From the sequence record MT995927.1: 64,000 bases of DNA; one strand, given 5' to 3'. The notes under the pieces are model-generated. The model saw nothing but the letters and a program-made list of their open reading frames with translations. It was not told the origin of the DNA and ran no database searches. The position numbers were made by a program, and so were the translations under genes. This document shows, in pieces, positions 2,781 through 13,628 of this stretch; the stretch's first letter is position 1, and the number at the start of each line of letters is the position of its first letter.

Positions 2781-3065
2781 ATGGCAAACGAATGCACTCC
2801 CGGTGTCTGGGATACACTAGTTGACTCGACAAAAGAAACTGAAAACCTACGTATCCGTTCCCAACTCATGCGGGCTCTCACCCGTACTATAAAGGGCTGG
2901 GATCTTCCGCAAAAAGACGCTGCTGCTCGCCTACATGTTACGCAACCGAGATTGAATGATCTTCTCAAAGGCAAGATTGACAAGTTCTCTCTGGACGCCC
3001 TGGTAAACCTACTGGACGCGGCTGATCTGACTCTTGAGATATCAGTGATCCCACGTGCAGTATAA
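2781..3065 (+). CDS. XRE/HigA-like helix-turn-helix protein (HTH_37-like), no adjacent toxin
   Basis: LPQKDAAARLHVTQPRLNDLLKGKIDKFSLDALVNLL is typical of XRE/HigA-like HTH proteins; GAGG RBS. Confidence 0.85.
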   Translation: MANECTPGVWDTLVDSTKETENLRIRSQLMRALTRTIKGWDLPQKDAAARLHVTQPRLNDLLKGKIDKFSLDALVNLLDAADLTLEISVIPRAV

Positions 3066-3068
3066 ACC

Positions 3069-3356
3069 ATGGGGACGCAGCTTGATACGGCCACCGGGTG
3101 GTTTCATGACAGCAAGGAAATAAAGAAAATGACAACTGATAAAAAGTTTAGCATTAAAGAACTCGGATGGGAAAAAGCCACTAATCTACCCGATGGTGAA
3201 TACTACACTATTCCTAAACATGGACCACAAAACTGGCGGTATGATCGCAAGATTATCAAAACCAAGAACAGTGTAAAACTGGTAAATGAACCAGATTATA
3301 GCTGGTCAGCCCCATTCTTTTTCGAGGCAAATAACTTGTTAATCGAAGAACCATGA
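3069..3356 (+). CDS. Hypothetical protein (paralog of 2510-2773); start may be 3129
   Basis: NLPDGEYYTIPKHGP...DR compared with NLPNGIYVTSPLHGP...DR. Confidence 0.7.
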   Translation: MGTQLDTATGWFHDSKEIKKMTTDKKFSIKELGWEKATNLPDGEYYTIPKHGPQNWRYDRKIIKTKNSVKLVNEPDYSWSAPFFFEANNLLIEEP

Positions 3357-3514
3357 CTATGAAACGATCACCAGGTTATTTTAAAAGAGTAGTAAAAGAA
3401 CTAACTGAGCGAGAGAATATTATACATCAGAAAGTTCTTAAATACATCAATGATAATCCGAATATTTCTTATAAAGAAGCACGTCAGATAGTAACTAAGG
3501 AGATTATAAAGTGA
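3353..3514 (+). CDS. Small basic protein, 53 aa (absent from ORF track)
   Basis: MTMKRSPGYFKRVVKELTERENIIHQKVLKYINDNPNISYKEARQIVTKEIIK; ATGA overlap upstream and GTGA overlap downstream fill the gap exactly. Confidence 0.7.
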   Translation: MTMKRSPGYFKRVVKELTERENIIHQKVLKYINDNPNISYKEARQIVTKEIIK

Positions 3515-3723
3515 CTATTTCAATTCCTGCATCAGTTCGTGGTGAGTTTGGAATTTATTACAAAAATAATAAGAATCTTCGACTGGGTCAGGCATGGCAT
3601 AATTACATGCGTCTTGAAAATATCCAAAATGAAATGGATAAAGAATGGGCTGATAAACTCTGGAATGCTTCTGATAAAGAAGCAGCTGATATGGTTGATG
3701 AAGCCACTAATTGGACTATGTAA
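3511..3723 (+). CDS. Hypothetical protein
   Basis: 70-aa ORF, GTG start with AAGGAG RBS. Confidence 0.8.
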   Translation: MTISIPASVRGEFGIYYKNNKNLRLGQAWHNYMRLENIQNEMDKEWADKLWNASDKEAADMVDEATNWTM

Positions 3724-3762
3724 CTAAACAATATTTACTATAGTAAATAAGGAGAAATACAA

Positions 3763-3906
3763 ATGACTAATGAAGAAATTATCGTAGATGAAAGTAAATG
3801 GGCCGATGACAGCGAGATGGTTGGCTGTAAACCAGTTGATCTGTTTATTGATTTTTACTGGGTAGAGCCCACTCATCATACTCAAGAAGGAAAAGAGGAT
3901 AATTAA
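3763..3906 (+). CDS. Small acidic protein, 47 aa (absent from ORF track)
   Basis: MTNEEIIVDESKWADDSEMVGCKPVDLFIDFYWVEPTHHTQEGKEDN; strong AAGGAG RBS; stop abuts the next start. Confidence 0.75.
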   Translation: MTNEEIIVDESKWADDSEMVGCKPVDLFIDFYWVEPTHHTQEGKEDN

Positions 3907-3907
3907 C

Positions 3908-4183
3908 ATGGGTGAATATACACAGAATGGTATTCGTCATTTTCGTCCGGATGATACCGAAGATACCTTTTATATCTTGGGTGATTGTTATGTAGCCAAT
4001 ACTATCGCCGATATTATCGAGATGGCAACTAAGAAATGGGGTGATGGTATTACTCTTGATATGATTAATATCAGTACTGAATATATTCATACAAGTTGTC
4101 TAGGGTATGATGAGTACGACCCCAGCGATTACAGTAATTATTTATGCATCTCTCGTGTTAGGGAAACATCGCTGGTTAAATAA
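3908..4183 (+). CDS. Hypothetical protein
   Basis: 91-aa ORF, GAGGA RBS. Confidence 0.8.
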   Translation: MGEYTQNGIRHFRPDDTEDTFYILGDCYVANTIADIIEMATKKWGDGITLDMINISTEYIHTSCLGYDEYDPSDYSNYLCISRVRETSLVK

Positions 4184-4196
4184 ATTAACGACATAA

Positions 4197-4218
4197 GCCC
4201 TCTCCTTCGGGAGAGGGC
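4197..4218 (+). terminator. GC-rich hairpin terminator
   Basis: GCCCTCTCC-TTCG-GGAGAGGGC after a stop codon. Confidence 0.8.
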
Positions 4219-4252
4219 ATTTATTCAGTTAAACTTTTAAGAATAAAAGAAT

Positions 4253-4280
4253 TAGCCCTACTGTTACAGCAGTAGGGCTA
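4253..4280. other. Second intergenic hairpin
   Basis: TAGCCCTACTG-TTACAG-CAGTAGGGCTA perfect 11-bp stem. Confidence 0.7.
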
Positions 4281-4348
4281 TATGCCGTTGAGTAAAAAAT
4301 ACTCAACATTTTCGCCCAAGTGGGCTTGGATTAACAAGAGGAACAATC

Positions 4349-4654
4349 ATGTTAATTCCAGTTACCGCTAACAATGTTAGCCCTGACCTGCACAGAATGC
4401 AGGAAGTAGGTTTCTTTTTCAAGAGACCCGATGGATCAACCCATAGCATGTCGGTTGCGAAAACGCAAGCCGATAATGTTATCCAATGTCGAGATCGTAG
4501 AGGTAACTTCATTGGTTATTGGGCTGGCCCTACGATAGGATACGTCAACAACGCAAGTTTAGCCGTATCCGTCAACCCCTTCGACAATTTCATAGTAACG
4601 GACACTGACATGGATCAGAAGAAGTTCTATGTAACCGAAAGGAGAAGCCTATGA
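4349..4654 (+). CDS. Hypothetical protein
   Basis: 101-aa ORF, GAGGA RBS. Confidence 0.75.
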   Translation: MLIPVTANNVSPDLHRMQEVGFFFKRPDGSTHSMSVAKTQADNVIQCRDRRGNFIGYWAGPTIGYVNNASLAVSVNPFDNFIVTDTDMDQKKFYVTERRSL

Positions 4655-4662
4655 TAAACAAC

Positions 4663-4682
4663 CCCTCTCCTGAAGGAGAGGG
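4663..4682. terminator. Hairpin terminator, possibly bidirectional
   Basis: CCCTCTCC-TGAA-GGAGAGGG after a stop codon. Confidence 0.75.
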
Positions 4683-4699
4683 ACTTATCTGAATTCTTT

Positions 4700-5160
4700 T
4701 TTTGTTTAAGTGAGAGCCGCCCGCTAAAGCGGCTCCCAAGTGGAGTTAAGTCTCCCGCTAAAGAGACACTCCAGTATACATGGGGTAGCGACTCCTCATG
4801 TAGATATCCTAATTAATCTCTTTAGCTAGTAATCAATACCAGTTATCACTCGTTGATAATTGATTTGTTTATTAACTAATTTGACTTAATCAGAATAATC
4901 AATACATATTGTTAATAACCTAGTATATTATTACCAGTATCATTGAGTAATACTGGTAATCAAATATTACTCATGAATATTACCTAATGTGGAACTGAGG
5001 AATCGGATCGCCCCGTAGGGGCTTTTATTTCATAATAAACTATACCGAAGGTATATCCTTATTCTAATAATAAACAATATTAGCATTATTCTAATAGCGT
5101 TAGCTAATACATACTGTCTCCCTAAAAGGAGACACAGTATAGATTATATTTTTTTTTAAT
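4700..5160. other. Non-coding hairpin-rich island (candidate origin or ncRNA)
   Basis: No ORF of 60 aa or more; at least 7 inverted repeats, three with CTAAA-containing loops; AT-rich core; lies between convergent terminators. Confidence 0.6.
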
Positions 5161-5270
5161 TAAAAATAATAAGTCTAGAGATAGACTTTCTTTATGCCTT
5201 TAATACCTTCTAATTTGCTCTATAATCGATTTTATTCATTATCCACTAGCATATTAGCCATACGACATAA

Positions 5271-5290
5271 AAGCCCTCCTATGAGGGCTT
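5271..5290 (-). terminator. Hairpin terminator
   Basis: AAGCCCTC-CTAT-GAGGGCTT downstream of the minus-strand gene 5340-5708. Confidence 0.7.
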
Positions 5291-5339
5291 AAATGCTTTA
5301 TTGATTATTAGACGAATGGGTTAATCAGAATTAAATACA

Positions 5340-5708
5340 TTACATTAATTCCTTTACATCATCTGGAATAGATTCACACCGATCTAAATCCCAGTAGATA
5401 TGCGTATAATGATCTTGATTTACAATACTGATGAAATCACCATTAGGGTCAGGTAAAGGTTTACGGATCACATCGACATAGATAGTGTAGTACAGATATA
5501 GATCACTGATAAGTTCATCGATATTTAGGTTATTACCTTCTGCATATTTACCATATTTAAAATAATGGGCTTCTTCTGCTACAGCATAACGGATTTTATC
5601 GTAATTTTGTGATGCGGCATATACACGTGCAAATAGGGGCCGATTAAATTTTCTACATTCACTAATATTCTTTCTTAAAGTATTTACTAAATTATCAATT
5701 GCACTCAT
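5340..5708 (-). CDS. Hypothetical protein
   Basis: 122-aa ORF, AGGT RBS, flanked by hairpins. Confidence 0.75.
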   Translation of the reverse strand: MSAIDNLVNTLRKNISECRKFNRPLFARVYAASQNYDKIRYAVAEEAHYFKYGKYAEGNNLNIDELISDLYLYYTIYVDVIRKPLPDPNGDFISIVNQDHYTHIYWDLDRCESIPDDVKELM

Positions 5709-5733
5709 TTAGATTACCTATTAAAATTATAGT

Positions 5734-5753
5734 GCTCTCCCCGAAGGGAGAGC
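5734..5753 (-). terminator. Terminator of the helicase gene
   Basis: GCTCTCCC/GGGAGAGC stem, loop reads TTCG on the minus strand. Confidence 0.75.
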
Positions 5754-5762
5754 TTTATGTTG

Positions 5763-7310
5763 TTAATATCCCCAGTCATCTCCACCAGTTGCTTGCATGT
5801 TACTAAGACTTGGTACGAAATCCATGTAATTGTTTTCTTCTTTATCGATATCCCATCTAATACCACCAATACGGTCTGGATCAAACGGCATAACAAAATA
5901 GTGATGCTTACTATCACTTACAACGTTACGGTGTTTACCACGTTGTACAGTTAGATAATACTTACCACTTACTTTAACAATGTGGAAGAAGAATTCCAGA
6001 TCAGGTTCTTGTCCAAGTCGACGACAACCATCATAGTAACCTTTGTTAGCAACTTGTTTAACAAAGTCTTCTGGTGGGATATTATCCCTGATTAGTTCTA
6101 GTGCCTGAGAACTTAACTGGTGTGGACTAAAGAATGTGATACCACGTGGCGCAGTATAATTACGCATTCGCCTAAATAGGAGACGAACGTCATCACCTGC
6201 TACACTGGTTACTAATCCAGTTTTAGGCAACATGTTTAGATAATCTACGCAGAGATATTGTAGTTCATAACCACGTGCTTGATATGTATCCAGATAGTTA
6301 ACTAAACCAGCAATCGTAAATTCAGTTGGGTCAAAACGGTACATTACTGGTTCGAAACCATTTTCACGAAGCCGAGCTGATACATATTCAGCTGCTTCAG
6401 CTTTACTAATGGAACTACGATCTACCTTGATACCTGTTTCATTTTCGTAAATATACTCATAAATGAAAATAAGGTTATCCGGGATCTCATTCTCAAGAGT
6501 AATAAACATTACTAATGGTTTCTTATTGATATCACGCATGTATGGTTTATTAAATAGGCATACATGACAAAATAGACTCATAGAAACGCCAGATTTATAT
6601 TGATGTTGTAGGCCACCACCGATAATAAATTCACCACGTTTTAATGCACCTAGATCACCAAGCATACGGTTAAAACCTTTCCATCCAGTTCGGAAAGCAC
6701 CATTTGGTGAAAGAATGGTTTTAGCCTCTTCAAAGAATCCTTCAATAGAATCTAAATTACCAAAATCAAGTGCACCCATTTCAGCTGGGTGTTTTTCTTC
6801 AGCACGTGCGCGAATATATGGGTCAGCTCTGGTTGCCATTTCATTAATGATTGCCGGAATATCAGCAGAGCCTCTATTGAAAAGAATTTTTGATGAACAT
6901 TCTTTTACAATAGCTTTTACCTTTTCATCAGCTAAGTAGCTATTTAGATCACGACGATATGAAGTTACACGCATAGCTAATGCCATGCCATTTGGAAATT
7001 CTTCTTCTACCGCATTTTTAACAGCATCGTATAGATAACTTTCTTCACGACAACATACTTGTAGTGATTGTAATACCTGTTGGGTAGCTGGGAAATATGC
7101 TTTCTGTTTCTTATTTAGATCCACTAGTAGATTACGAAGATCTAAAAATGTTTGTCGACCATGATCTACATCTAATGTACCACCCTTATCATTTAGAGTA
7201 TCAAGAATCTCAGTAACCAATTCATTGGATGGTTCCACTGGAGAATCTTCTCGATTTTCTAAACATAATAGAGTGATACATGAAACGAGTAATTGTTTTG
7301 GACTTGACAT
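5763..7310 (-). CDS. dnaB: DnaB-like replicative helicase (phiKZ gp118-like)
   Basis: FRTGWKGFNRMLG, RGEF, variant Walker A GGLQHQYKS, FITLEN, Walker B VDYL, FFSPHQL; 515 aa. Confidence 0.9.
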   Translation of the reverse strand: MSSPKQLLVSCITLLCLENREDSPVEPSNELVTEILDTLNDKGGTLDVDHGRQTFLDLRNLLVDLNKKQKAYFPATQQVLQSLQVCCREESYLYDAVKNAVEEEFPNGMALAMRVTSYRRDLNSYLADEKVKAIVKECSSKILFNRGSADIPAIINEMATRADPYIRARAEEKHPAEMGALDFGNLDSIEGFFEEAKTILSPNGAFRTGWKGFNRMLGDLGALKRGEFIIGGGLQHQYKSGVSMSLFCHVCLFNKPYMRDINKKPLVMFITLENEIPDNLIFIYEYIYENETGIKVDRSSISKAEAAEYVSARLRENGFEPVMYRFDPTEFTIAGLVNYLDTYQARGYELQYLCVDYLNMLPKTGLVTSVAGDDVRLLFRRMRNYTAPRGITFFSPHQLSSQALELIRDNIPPEDFVKQVANKGYYDGCRRLGQEPDLEFFFHIVKVSGKYYLTVQRGKHRNVVSDSKHHYFVMPFDPDRIGGIRWDIDKEENNYMDFVPSLSNMQATGGDDWGY

Positions 7311-7449
7311 TTTTATAGATTTCCAATTGTGAAATTAAGAGATGTACAGTGTATCATTTAGATAGCTAGTAATTTTAGTGAATGTATTTGCTATATTGCT
7401 ATGTAGACAGTTCCCAAAAGCCTAAAGTTACAATATAGGTACTTTCACA

Positions 7450-7983
7450 ATGACCCAAGTTCTGGTTATGCCAAAAGCTGTTTTTGAATCATATAAAACA
7501 GCAGGTGTACAATTTAACAAATTGTTAGACACCAACTATATAGTTTCCGAAACCTCCGTAAATGATCTTGCGGAGATACATCAGGCTTTAACTGCTTTCC
7601 CCTTTCTGTTACCAGAAAAACTAGATATTAAGTTAGCAGTAAGCCCGATAATCAAAGTTGCTGAGCTAGGTGAAATAGACGGTCCTGACCAATTTAAGAT
7701 GAAGGATTTACACAATCGTTTAGAGAGCCGCCTAGCGACTAATGAACTTAGGGATGCAGGTAACCGTAATTTAGTGTACGATTATTACCTATATCCTGTA
7801 GATGAGAATCTGTGGGTTGCGGTGCAGCAGAGTGCGCACATTGCAAGTAGCGATCCTAGACGTGTCTCAATTCAACTTAACCATACTTTCTTTGATAGTA
7901 TGATAAATGAAATGTTGAACACCCGCCCACGTGAATCCGTGGCGTCAACACAAATTTTTACCTATTATTTGGAGAGCTGCTAG
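7450..7983 (+). CDS. Minor capsid/virion protein (gp119-like)
   Basis: 177 aa, directly upstream of the major capsid gene; identified from recalled synteny. Confidence 0.7.
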   Translation: MTQVLVMPKAVFESYKTAGVQFNKLLDTNYIVSETSVNDLAEIHQALTAFPFLLPEKLDIKLAVSPIIKVAELGEIDGPDQFKMKDLHNRLESRLATNELRDAGNRNLVYDYYLYPVDENLWVAVQQSAHIASSDPRRVSIQLNHTFFDSMINEMLNTRPRESVASTQIFTYYLESC

Positions 7984-10420: not shown

Positions 10421-10452
10421 TTACATTAAAAAAAGTTTAAGATCTATATTAC
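10421..10452 (+). promoter_or_regulatory. phiKZ-type early promoter (A tract plus TATTAC)
   Basis: TTACATTAAAAAAAGTTTAAGATCTATATTAC, 31 of 32 nt identical to 62126-62157; TATTAC is the reported early promoter core. Confidence 0.8.
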
Positions 10453-10495: not shown

Positions 10496-10948
10496 ATGAA
10501 CGTTCAATTATTTCCAGAAGTCATCGAAAGATGGCAAGATGCCCTAAGGGTATCTCTTATAGAAAAAAATACCATGGTAGATAATAAGATGTCTACCGTA
10601 GATGATGATAAATACATTAATACTTTCTTTGAAGAATTCCATCCTGTTCAGGATGCCTTTATGCCCAAAGGGCTAGAGGACTTTATTACTGATTATGCCA
10701 AGAAAAACATTGAGGAGATCCTTCAAGAAAAACAGTTTAAGCGGGCCACCGAAAAGTTATATTGTTCGAGTGACCCGCATAAATGGCAGAAATCAAGTAA
10801 TAAGGAAAAGAGTGAATCCTTTAAGGGAAGGTCCGTACATCAAACTAAAAAGAGGCTCCCCAACATTGTAGATTTGGAGGCCGTTGTGATTAAGGTAGAT
10901 TTCAATGGTAACACTAAAAATTGCGGGGCTTACTCAAGTATCAGTTAA
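10496..10948 (+). CDS. Hypothetical early protein (gp121-like)
   Basis: 150-aa ORF behind the early promoter, AGGT RBS. Confidence 0.7.
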   Translation: MNVQLFPEVIERWQDALRVSLIEKNTMVDNKMSTVDDDKYINTFFEEFHPVQDAFMPKGLEDFITDYAKKNIEEILQEKQFKRATEKLYCSSDPHKWQKSSNKEKSESFKGRSVHQTKKRLPNIVDLEAVVIKVDFNGNTKNCGAYSSIS

Positions 10949-11987
10949 GCCTACTATCGATCACCCGTATGATAAGAAATCGGGAACTGCATACACTAAG
11001 GGTGATCCATACGCTAATTGGAATCTCCCTGTCTCACGTTTTGTTGAGTATCGGAATGAATCATTTCATCGTATTACTGTAGTCGATTCATCTGGTCACG
11101 CTATCAATATTGGGACATCCCGTAAGTATGTAATGTCTAATAGACTAGTAGTTAAGGTCATTTACCGATGGAGTGGTGATGATAGTTTTAACTATGAAGT
11201 TATGGCTAAATCTATTCCAGGTTTTACACCTGAGGAAATGTTAGAATATATTCAGTCATTTAGTCGACAGACATTCGATCAGTTTAATAACCAGCTATCT
11301 GAGATTACTATTTGGTATTCAATTGACTTATCAAAACTAGTAGATCAGTATCATGGTGGTTGGATTCAGAGTTTAGGTATCCAAGTATTTAAAACTGAGT
11401 ATAGTCAGTATTTTGAATTTTATCCAAATAGAAATATTAGTCCTCCTGGTTACAGCGGACTTAGTCCAGAAGAAGAAGCACTTTCTAATCAAGTATGGAA
11501 TGAAACATATTCTTTAACGTATAATACTGACATCAATAAACCAGATAAATTGTTTTATGTAATGGCTGGCAGAATTATGGCCATTGAGTCAATCTACAAT
11601 CCATCATTAGATCCTGGTCTTATTGTTAATATCCGTGGTAAGCATGGATGTATTAGTCATAATGGCGAAAAGAGATATGTAATACCTCCTGAACAGTTCC
11701 ATGAAAATGGTTTCTTTAGAACACATGAAGAAGCTGCTGCAATGGTTGGAATTAAAGATAAGAAAGTTATTGAACGTCTTAAGACTGCACTCTTAACAGC
11801 GGCTGATATTAAGGAAAGGGAAGCCCAGGAAAAAGCAGCTGGTACGTTTGATAAAGAATTCAAACCAAAAGATGTTGTATTGATTCATGGTCTAAAATGG
11901 GGTGATCTAAACTCCATTGCCTCTGATCTAGTATCATCCATTAAAATTGTAGGTTCACTGATGGATTTAATTTTGCCAAAAGTTTAG
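10905..11987 (+). CDS. Hypothetical protein (gp122-like)
   Basis: 360-aa ORF overlapping the previous gene by 44 nt, AAGGT RBS. Confidence 0.8.
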   Translation: MVTLKIAGLTQVSVKPTIDHPYDKKSGTAYTKGDPYANWNLPVSRFVEYRNESFHRITVVDSSGHAINIGTSRKYVMSNRLVVKVIYRWSGDDSFNYEVMAKSIPGFTPEEMLEYIQSFSRQTFDQFNNQLSEITIWYSIDLSKLVDQYHGGWIQSLGIQVFKTEYSQYFEFYPNRNISPPGYSGLSPEEEALSNQVWNETYSLTYNTDINKPDKLFYVMAGRIMAIESIYNPSLDPGLIVNIRGKHGCISHNGEKRYVIPPEQFHENGFFRTHEEAAAMVGIKDKKVIERLKTALLTAADIKEREAQEKAAGTFDKEFKPKDVVLIHGLKWGDLNSIASDLVSSIKIVGSLMDLILPKV

Positions 11988-11996
11988 GAGTTTATA

Positions 11997-13628
11997 ATGC
12001 CGGATCCATTTCTAATTGAAAAGATTCGTGAAAATACGCCTTGCATGAATCCAACACTAGCAAATGGTATCACAGTCGAACACACCATGACTCGTGATCC
12101 AAATACTGGTGTTAATATGACCAGGCGTTATATTGATTCTTTATTTGATATCAGTTCAGTTCTATTTCCCGATGGCTTCAAATATGAAGGCAATCGTGCA
12201 TGTACACCGCTTAAGCATTTTGAAGAGATTACTCGGGAATATAATGCTAAGCGTATTGCCAATATTGCTCCAACTGACATGTACATGATTGACCTAATGT
12301 TTAGTTATAAAGGGGAAATGCTTTATCCTCGTCCAATGTTGTTACCAGCTTTTAAGAGAGGCAATATGGTAACTATCAATGGTGCGAAATATATCGGTTC
12401 ACCAGTATTAACTGATGTTGGGTTCTCTGTACTTAATGATAGCATCTTCATCCCGTTTCGTCGTACTAAGCTAACCTTTAAACAAACTGACCACCATTAC
12501 ATGTGCAATGGTCAGCGTAAAATCATGTATGTGATCTGGTCACAGATTCACAATGAAATGGCTAAGCGTACTAAACGAGATCTGGATAATCGACCACATA
12601 TTGAGTCATGTTTAGCTCATTATTTCTTCTGTCAGTTTGGAGTAACTCAAACTTTCAAACAATGGGCTAATGTAGATGTTAAGTGTGGACTGCTGTCTGA
12701 TTTTCCTGAAGAAGAATATCCACGTGAAAAGTGGAATATTTATTCCAGTGCAACATTAAAAGGCAAACATCCCACCGGTGAAATGGTTCTTGTTATACCT
12801 CGTCATCAAGAATCTATTTTTGCCACACGACTTATCGCTGGTTTCTGGTATGTGGTCGATGCATTTCCAATGCGGTTTACTCGACCTGAATATGTAGATA
12901 GTACCAACTTATGGCGTGTTATCCTAGGTCACATGGTGTTTGGTGATTTTGAGCACCAAGGTAAAGTAGAGGAAAACATTGATTCACACCTACACAGTTT
13001 CTGTAATTCACTAGACGAAATGACTATTGAAGAACTTAAAACAGTTGGTGTCAATGTAAGTACTATTTGGGAACTTCTTTACGAGATCATGACTAGTTTG
13101 GCTCATCATCTTTATGCTACTGATATTGATGAAACTAGTATGTATGGTAAAAGGTTAACAGTACTGCATTACTTGATGTCAGAGTTTAACTATGCTGTAA
13201 GTATGTTTGGTTATATGTTCCAGTCTAGGCGTGATCGTGAATGGACTGTACAAGAGCTAAACGAAGGTTTAAAACGTTCTTTTAAACTACAGACAGCTAT
13301 TAAACGATTAACAGTGGACCATGGTGAACTCGATACAATGAGTAATCCAAACTCCAGTATGTTGATTAAAGGGACATCTATCCTAGTTACACAGGATCGC
13401 GCTAAAACAGCTAAGGCTCATAATAAGTCTCTAATCAATGACTCATCTAGGATTATTCACGCATCTATTGCTGAGGTAGGTCAATATAAAAACCAACCTA
13501 AGAACAACCCGGATGGTCGAGGTAGGCTTAATATGTATACCAAAGTGGGTCCAACTGGACTAGTTGAACGTCGTGAAGAAGTGCGTGAAATAATTGACAA
13601 CGCTCAATTAATGTTCCGTGCAAAATAA
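11997..13628 (+). CDS. gp123: Non-virion RNA polymerase, beta-like subunit N-terminal part (gp123-like)
   Basis: 543 aa and position as recalled; rpoB-like elements (TINGAKYIGSP, H.S.AEVGQ...P...PDGRGRLN). Confidence 0.85.
   Translation: MPDPFLIEKIRENTPCMNPTLANGITVEHTMTRDPNTGVNMTRRYIDSLFDISSVLFPDGFKYEGNRACTPLKHFEEITREYNAKRIANIAPTDMYMIDLMFSYKGEMLYPRPMLLPAFKRGNMVTINGAKYIGSPVLTDVGFSVLNDSIFIPFRRTKLTFKQTDHHYMCNGQRKIMYVIWSQIHNEMAKRTKRDLDNRPHIESCLAHYFFCQFGVTQTFKQWANVDVKCGLLSDFPEEEYPREKWNIYSSATLKGKHPTGEMVLVIPRHQESIFATRLIAGFWYVVDAFPMRFTRPEYVDSTNLWRVILGHMVFGDFEHQGKVEENIDSHLHSFCNSLDEMTIEELKTVGVNVSTIWELLYEIMTSLAHHLYATDIDETSMYGKRLTVLHYLMSEFNYAVSMFGYMFQSRRDREWTVQELNEGLKRSFKLQTAIKRLTVDHGELDTMSNPNSSMLIKGTSILVTQDRAKTAKAHNKSLINDSSRIIHASIAEVGQYKNQPKNNPDGRGRLNMYTKVGPTGLVERREEVREIIDNAQLMFRAK

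Follow-up and report, generated by a model that had tools for sequence, protein, structure and literature searches.

The largest gene-free gap in the 64,000-nucleotide stretch of DNA analyzed here (the window, from sequence record MT995927.1) probably contains a non-coding transcription unit accompanied by regulatory DNA, and not a replication origin, an explanation that we hold with moderate confidence. A middle-class promoter with TATG at the start site fires leftward from position 4905, giving rise to a very abundant, tightly folded RNA of ~197 nt made up of a long AT-rich hairpin, a small hairpin, and two tandem GC hairpins with an UUUAGCGG loop. Most of the transcripts stop at 4708, 6 nt past the last hairpin and without a U-tract, and a minority read through to the terminator at 4197-4219, reaching a total of 715 nt and running antisense to the convergent plus-strand ORF 4349-4654. 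The hairpins that share one loop would represent a special termination or 3'-end signal, with the loop being read by a factor, and the unit may function as a leader or attenuator that sets the amount of antisense RNA across the convergent gene; the stable RNA would be left over as a by-product, which may act in trans too.

The left half of this island is already known, as it is the phiKZ ncRNA candidate at the orthologous locus. What we add is the association of a conserved loop with mapped termination sites at two loci, together with a block conserved across lineages, the probable misannotation of p39/p40, and the apparent inversions of hairpin loops in relatives.

The gene-free gap and the phage that carries it

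The DNA surrounding the island matches that of the Pseudomonas phages T2P, U1B, U5 and phi9_PA9 at 100% identity, and the island itself shows ~97.7% identity with positions 114672-115333 of phiKZ, where the same flanking genes are present, indicating that the phage of the window is phiKZ-like. Coordinates were converted by adding 110017 to the window position to obtain the phiKZ position. The island is flanked by a plus-strand gene block (phiKZ 111-117) on one side and by the minus-strand operon that runs from 117.4 to DnaB on the other. The first-pass annotation of this DNA had described a gene-free island fenced by terminators, and this was confirmed: with a cut-off of at least 50 aa on both strands, the ORF-free gap extends from 4655 to 5339 and its 685 bp make it the largest in the 64 kb, the runners-up measuring 196 bp (50-aa cut-off) and 366 bp (70-aa cut-off). 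The small ORFs inside the gap (29-49 aa) are not conserved in relatives, where they show non-synonymous changes, frameshifts or loss of the stop codon. Both fencing terminators are real. The left one is the hairpin at 4663-4682 (plus strand), which terminates the ORF 4349-4654; it has a 9-bp stem with the phiKZ-type tail CTTAT, resembles a terminator when read on the minus strand as well, and has a loop that varies freely in relatives. The right one corresponds to the terminator of the DnaB operon (5264-5288, minus strand), with its stem at 5273-5288 followed by the tail TTTTATGTC; a minus-sense RNA 3' end at 5264 was revealed by sequencing-adapter junctions in Illumina run X1. Terminator-like sites are ~9 times more common in this region than in shuffled sequence (7 in 1.5 kb, compared with 0.8 expected). 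The published phiKZ map also includes a 76-nt plus-strand unit (P058 to T052; window 4146-4222), whose start lies within the last part of gene 116 and which stops at the bidirectional terminator 4197-4219.

The hairpins that had been listed, here placed at 4714-4735, 4743-4772, 4777-4802, 4930-4960, 5010-5022, 5041-5055 and 5111-5140 all fold as described; the one proposed at about 4831-4865 is present, but it is only the tip of an imperfect hairpin of ~95 nt that spans 4803-4901. The direct repeats were also verified (TTATTCTAATA at 5059 and 5086, AATCAATAC at 4831 and 4897), as was the AT-rich core, whose 27.5% GC at 4801-5200 is the lowest value within the first 12 kb. No further copies of the TTATTCTAATA and TAATAAAC repeats were found in the window. 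At a permissive threshold, the sole Rfam match was a chance miRNA (E = 0.99), and scans of the window for tRNA and tmRNA gave no hit.

At window 5302-5339, phiKZ and many relatives carry ~232 extra bases encoding PHIKZ117.3 (78 aa, minus strand), an insert that is absent from the phage of the window, SL2, OMKO1 and a few others. The adjacent gene 117.4 (window 5340-5708) differs from phiKZ at 31 of 369 bases and at 1 amino acid; compared with the 2-3% of differences observed in 4190-5300, this reveals a sharp mosaic boundary near 5300.

The abundant leftward RNA and its read-through

The left half of the island corresponds to a structured ncRNA (4708-4905, minus strand; 197 nt, TSS P060 and TTS T053), which is the ortholog of the phiKZ transcript TU089, or '5'UTR_p40' ncRNA. 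Using Grad-seq and northern blot, Gerovac et al. (2021; PMC8545117) observed a ~180-nt ncRNA 'from the 5'UTR of p40' together with a longer species, and the ~180-nt RNA sediments apart from mRNAs, in Grad-seq fractions 4-10, the RNAP and 30S regions included (PMC8545117). The northern probe JVO-18831 corresponds to window 4840-4868 in plus sense, and therefore the RNA detected is the minus-strand one. A size of 196 nt was given for this ncRNA by Putzeys et al. (2024; PMC10914365), whose supplement (bioRxiv 10.1101/2023.10.13.562163) locates P060, a 'middle promoter' found by Wicke et al. (2021; PMC8244752) as well, at phiKZ 114922(-), and T053, to which the authors did not assign an intrinsic class, at 114725(-). 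In the same source, TU089 is 197 nt long and has no gene inside, and TU088 is 715 nt long and ends with T051 at 114207. The window equivalents of P060, T053 and T051 are 4905, 4708 and 4190, respectively; independently of these tables, public reads led us to assign the start to position 4905, the G of a TATG, with ends close to 4700 and 4190. The P060 start-site sequence matches the window apart from one SNP. The orthologous locus (~97.7%) has the same start-site sequence, terminal hairpins and length, with the northern probe mapping inside, and the phage of the window differs by a few SNPs only.

The public read runs are from phiKZ itself and not from the phage of the window. The depth of the Nanopore cDNA run X11 was 16,600-38,000 over 4714-4935 and 3,000-7,600 over 4196-4713, compared with 17-42 on the neighboring genes and zero over 4936-5231; the ncRNA depth in this phiKZ run is therefore ~1000-fold above that of the flanking genes. 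A poly-T loose end was observed at 4697, where the depth falls. When the minus strand of 4700-4905 (206 nt) was folded, an energy of -67.9 kcal/mol was obtained (z = -6.76 vs shuffles). The 5' two-fifths of the RNA form the AT-rich imperfect hairpin (4803-4901, ~95 nt), which is more stable on the minus strand than on the plus strand (-24.5 vs -19.4 kcal/mol), and folding also predicts a small hairpin, C (4777-4802, minus strand). The alignment of the genus (9 genomes) revealed 7 variable sites in ~200 nt, too few for covariation in most of the RNA. The idea of a structured ncRNA formulated from the letters alone is correct for the left part of the island. The leftward RNA of roughly 450 nt that had been postulated does exist as a leftward RNA, but it starts at 4905 and not at the A9/TATAAT near 5140, and its length is ~197 nt (715 nt for the read-through).

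In the promoter region of the ncRNA (P060, middle; 4905-4960, minus strand), TATG occupies 4908-4905, its G being the +1 position, and an A-rich run precedes the TACT found at 4925-4922. This A-rich run with TACT ~19 nt upstream of the start fits the published phiKZ middle/late promoter motifs (PMC8244752, PMC7598289). Transcription of phiKZ is independent of the host polymerase (PMC8244752, PMC7598289). As for the A9/T9 tract with a minus-strand TATAAT (5143-5158), which had been suggested as the promoter, the string exists at 5143-5157 on the minus strand, yet no phiKZ TSS is mapped there and its fit to the phage promoter motifs is poor. We derived an early (virion RNAP) promoter consensus from the phiKZ early regions, consisting of an A-rich run, TTTAAGA, TATATTAC and N4-TG; the A9/TATAAT site has 5 of the 8 core bases of this consensus and its upstream element is missing. 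The search for an early promoter in the island gave only partial ATATTAC strings, at 4964-4970 and 4976-4982 (plus strand). Elsewhere in the window, the full early-promoter pattern (A-rich run, TTTAAGAT, TATATTAC, N4, TG) occurs at 10445, 61634 and 62150 (plus strand). A late promoter of the published map, P059 (window 4439, minus strand), is located inside the plus-strand ORF 4349-4654.

A perfect 11-bp inverted repeat with a 9-nt spacer (4930-4960) is present upstream of the ncRNA start. Its spacer (4941-4949) is inverted in five of the nine related genomes (PA7, SL2, FBPa36, PA02 and Wadjak2), and the arms are invariant. The loop of a second perfect hairpin (4264-4269) shows the same kind of flip, an exact reverse complement between unchanged arms, in PA7, PA02 and Wadjak2 and, in part, in 6B. 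Given that the arms are unchanged and that the pattern is independent of other SNPs, these changes look like recurrent small inversions at palindromes. The 4930-4960 palindrome was not found elsewhere in the parts of the genome scanned, and no GAATAAGGA target site was found elsewhere.

The read-through part of TU088 (4190-4707, minus strand; the whole transcript being 715 nt) runs antisense to the ORF 4349-4654 as far as the bidirectional terminator 4197-4219; an adapter junction in Illumina run X1 revealed a minus-sense 3' end at 4190. Under TU088, phiKZ is annotated with the minus-strand ORFs p39 and p40 (117.1/117.2; window 4303-4611), and most other genomes are annotated with a 101-aa plus-strand ORF. 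This plus-strand ORF is a member of a PHROG family, has its own Shine-Dalgarno sequence and its own terminator, and is intact in 9 of 9 genomes; in phage 6B it carries 7 substitutions, 5 of them silent, and p39 has a premature stop. Since the plus-strand ORF is intact, with mostly silent changes, and p39 is interrupted in 6B, we read TU088 as antisense RNA over a real plus-strand gene. The antisense target is probably coding, and the minus-strand 'genes' p39/p40 are probably misannotated antisense RNA. The ONT-cappable-seq list includes no plus-strand start for the ORF 4349-4654. If p39/p40 are non-coding, as is probable, the abundant RNA would represent the 5' portion of a transcript that runs antisense, and not a true 5'UTR. 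In a published phiKZ transposon library (PMC12676376), insertions were tolerated in all the annotated genes around the island, including 117.1 and 117.2, which indicates that the read-through part is not essential in the laboratory. This organization resembles that of the phiKZ 5'UTR RNAs generated by premature termination, for example upstream of PHIKZ221 and PHIKZ302 (Putzeys 2024, PMC10914365), in that a strong promoter, early termination, an abundant short RNA and minor read-through are present; however, the read-through from the island is antisense to a convergent ORF and is not a clear sense mRNA.

Hairpins that share one loop

The terminal hairpin of the RNA, A (4714-4735, minus strand), has a 7-bp stem on the DNA, and its DNA loop CCGCTAAA corresponds to the RNA loop UUUAGCGG. 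In the minus-strand RNA, the stem reaches 11-12 bp with G.U pairs, and the energy is -20.0 kcal/mol vs -14.6 on the plus strand; this longer and more stable hairpin agrees with the strand that is transcribed. The mapped RNA 3' end (4708) is located 6 nt downstream of hairpin A. Hairpin B (4743-4772, minus strand) is a bulged tandem copy of A with an identical 8-nt loop and an added outer stem. Together, A and B constitute a 34-nt tandem duplication in which the loop is the same at 8 of 8 bases and both partners of two stem pairs have been replaced in a compensatory manner (C-G to T-A and G-C to T-A). A scan of 86% of phiKZ revealed a third copy of the loop at 12019-12044, on an unrelated 9-bp stem, and this hairpin is identical in Pawinskivirus PS119XW. 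The site T003, at 12011(-), is 8 nt past this third hairpin; the minus-strand unit that it closes measures 377 nt and begins within a small plus-strand ORF. In the 86% of phiKZ scanned, hairpins with the exact loop thus occur in three copies at two loci, all of them just upstream of mapped minus-strand termination sites, and the motif is absent from every other published phiKZ terminator listed. The suggestion that one loop on different stems reflects selection on the loop gains support from the compensatory changes between copies and from the third copy on an unrelated stem, in phiKZ and Pawinskivirus.

Judged as intrinsic terminators, hairpins A and B lack a U-tract, as they are followed by the tail UCACUUAAAC; a U-tract is present after the fencing hairpins (4663-4682 and 5273-5288) and after the hairpin 5010-5022. 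The canonical phiKZ intrinsic terminators have a GC stem, a 4-nt loop and a TTAT tail (Putzeys 2024, PMC10914365), and the hairpins 4663-4682, 5273-5288 and 4197-4219 fit this motif. In contrast, A and B have conserved 8-nt loops and no T-rich tail. The island site resembles T003 in several respects: the 8-nt loop and the strand are the same, the 3' end is 6-8 nt after the stem, both sites were left unclassified by ARNold, and both end antisense or non-coding minus-strand transcripts beside a small plus-strand ORF with a related upstream cassette. However, T003 has one hairpin only, the 9-bp stem of which is unrelated, and the TTTTATG tail that follows it is missing from the island copy. We interpret the UUUAGCGG loop as marking an uncommon type of hairpin that serves, at two loci, as a termination or 3'-end signal of non-coding or antisense transcripts from the minus strand. 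A factor, which could be the phage RNA polymerase or else an RNA-binding protein, would read this loop. Compared with a replication origin, a milder novelty would be that a dedicated phage factor for termination or RNA binding recognizes the loop. The loop could instead be kept for structural reasons, since in the modeled fold two U.G pairs can close a UAGC tetraloop.

The second locus (phiKZ 11990-12540; PS119XW 2345-2880) has the same layout, with the UUUAGCGG-loop hairpin at the minus-strand TTS 12011. Its small plus-strand ORF (MKVFETSS..., the original gene 24) has been re-annotated as the minus-strand 024.1/024.2, and a non-coding stretch of ~270 nt is ~93% alike between phiKZ and PS119XW (by eye, not computed). 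In PS119XW, the cassette of this locus adjoins the DnaB island. The upstream cassette, consisting of a terminator and a 5'UTR hairpin, shows 77% identity over 84 nt with window 4245-4327; homology of the ORF 4349-4654 to PS119XW or to the phiKZ gene-24 ORF was not detected, only the upstream cassettes being alike.

The same hairpins bear on an alternative that we consider possible but rather unlikely, in which the ~197-nt RNA would itself be the functional product, a trans-acting regulatory RNA or decoy whose two identical loops would bind a protein dimer or another RNA. As an example, the CCGCUAAA loop in the plus-strand 3'UTR of genes 22-23 (phiKZ 12019-12044) is a perfect complement of the UUUAGCGG loops, which would allow a kissing-loop interaction, and a plus-strand transcript across this complementary hairpin has been mapped (TU004, 10695-12204). 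The extreme abundance and discrete ends of the RNA, its sedimentation apart from mRNAs (fractions 4-10, with the RNAP and 30S regions), and the identity of the loop in three hairpins with different stems are consistent with this alternative; however, both hairpin sites coincide with sites of termination and are already accounted for in this way, the Pawinskivirus island does not include the RNA part, and Rfam gave no match. The loops (UUUAGCGG twice and UUUUAG) are also devoid of the GGA motifs of the RsmY/RsmZ/CsrB (Rsm/Csr) sponge kind. In the literature searched, no function is reported for any phiKZ non-coding RNA. The raw-read RIP-seq run X24 had 0 reads on the stretch.

The right-hand block and the question of an origin

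Conservation across lineages defines a non-coding module in the right part of the island (4964-5140, given on the plus strand, although the strand is not settled). Its elements are a TTACT motif, the hairpin 5010-5022, which resembles a terminator and has a T-run, an invariant core (5018-5075) that contains the hairpin 5041-5055, two TTATTC repeats, and a final bulged hairpin (5111-5140) with the loop CTAAAA. The core is ~90% identical in Pawinskivirus phages, in which DnaB is only 63% identical. A metagenome scan for relatives provided one useful contig, L007, which shares with Pawinskivirus a homologous stretch of ~200 nt at 70% identity; in L007, the module precedes the gene of a virion-protein paralog and the gene context is different, and for the left-hand neighbor gene no homolog was found. 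The search for further relatives in IMG/VR (DnaB-based and pattern scans) gave only PA7 or chance matches. The elements shared across the three lineages are TTACT, a small GC hairpin followed by TTTTATTT, the invariant hairpin ATACC-GAA-GGTAT, and two TCCTTATTC-like repeats. The stem of the final hairpin is wholly different between lineages, and its loop is C/A-rich throughout (CTAAAA, CCCAAA, CCCTAA). The published map has no TSS or TTS between phiKZ 114923 and 115942, and the depth of the Nanopore run is zero over 4936-5231; an Illumina contig, which carries no direction or local depth, spans 4608-5293. The consensus fold of the three lineages consists of discrete hairpins only, with weak z-scores (-1.2 to -3.5) that do not settle the strand. 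We take the block to be a putative protein-binding or promoter-leader element, undescribed so far within the literature searched. The published 'sRNA upstream of gp182' was considered as a counterpart and ruled out, because gp182 has an upstream gap of only 55 nt and is a different locus.

It is improbable, in our view, that the island is mostly spacer, that is, a buffer between convergent operons containing terminators and a strong stray promoter, in which the RNA would be a by-product with no role and the block would be the remnant of a promoter-leader whose gene was lost. The tolerance of the flanking annotated genes to transposon insertions, the lineage-specific presence of the island, the free flipping of hairpin loops in relatives, and the fact that the block precedes a gene in L007 and has nothing conserved after it in the window agree with this possibility. 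Nevertheless, it is opposed by a block that is ~90% identical between genera in which DnaB is 63% identical, by the conserved loop with its compensated stems, and by an RNA that is far more abundant than its neighbors.

The origin with primase- or helicase-loading hairpins that was first suggested for this place received no direct support: hairpins A and B are inside the abundant RNA, just before its 3' end, and the hairpin 5111-5140, with its CTAAAA loop, is outside the ncRNA and has no mapped transcript. A transcription-primed origin is very unlikely too. In this case, the middle promoter would fire into the AT-rich 4803-4905, an R-loop would prime DNA synthesis beside the helicase gene, and the repeats in 5032-5096 would be initiator sites. 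Extended to a primase-less, nucleus-forming phage, and with an equally low probability, the R-loop at 4803-4905 would arise from the very strong 4905 promoter, the loop hairpins would fix where the primer ends, and the conserved repeat block 5018-5096, beside DnaB, would serve as the binding site of an initiator. Several features are in line with this idea: the middle promoter leads directly into an AT-rich segment of ~100 bp, direct repeats and the block shared between genera are close by, and the DnaB gene is at most 0.5 kb away. An AT-rich region suitable for unwinding is accompanied by repeats (27.5% GC at 4801-5200, two direct-repeat pairs), which is a weak and non-specific feature. According to a 2026 preprint, these phages are without a dedicated primase and RNA-DNA hybrids are suggested to start replication, and the literature searched reports no replication origin for phiKZ or these phages. 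However, the RNA has a precise 3' end after the hairpins and accumulates as free RNA in gradients, the GC skew only follows gene direction, and the window contains no other copies of the repeat motifs. The element is also not kept at the same place in relatives, since in Psa21 the convergent gap is only 54 bp and the island is absent, in Viktualia the gene order is different, and the Pawinskivirus island keeps only the right-hand block and is without the promoter and AT-rich RNA part.

In phage T4, oriF and oriG combine a middle promoter with a downstream unwinding element and are primed by an R-loop. The island is similar in having a middle-class promoter followed by an AT-rich stretch and in being a non-essential, lineage-specific element, but its RNA is terminated and released, and the likeness is one of form alone. 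The locus is a reasonable but unproven origin candidate.

Returning to the non-coding transcription unit that we favor, the annotation of this region would change in that p39/p40 are probably antisense RNA over a real plus-strand ORF, and the block conserved across genera represents a second, undescribed non-coding element. The rare class of hairpins with a shared loop at the RNA end offers a concrete handle, through loop mutants and pull-down of the factor, that bears on termination by the non-canonical phage RNA polymerases, a process that is poorly understood.
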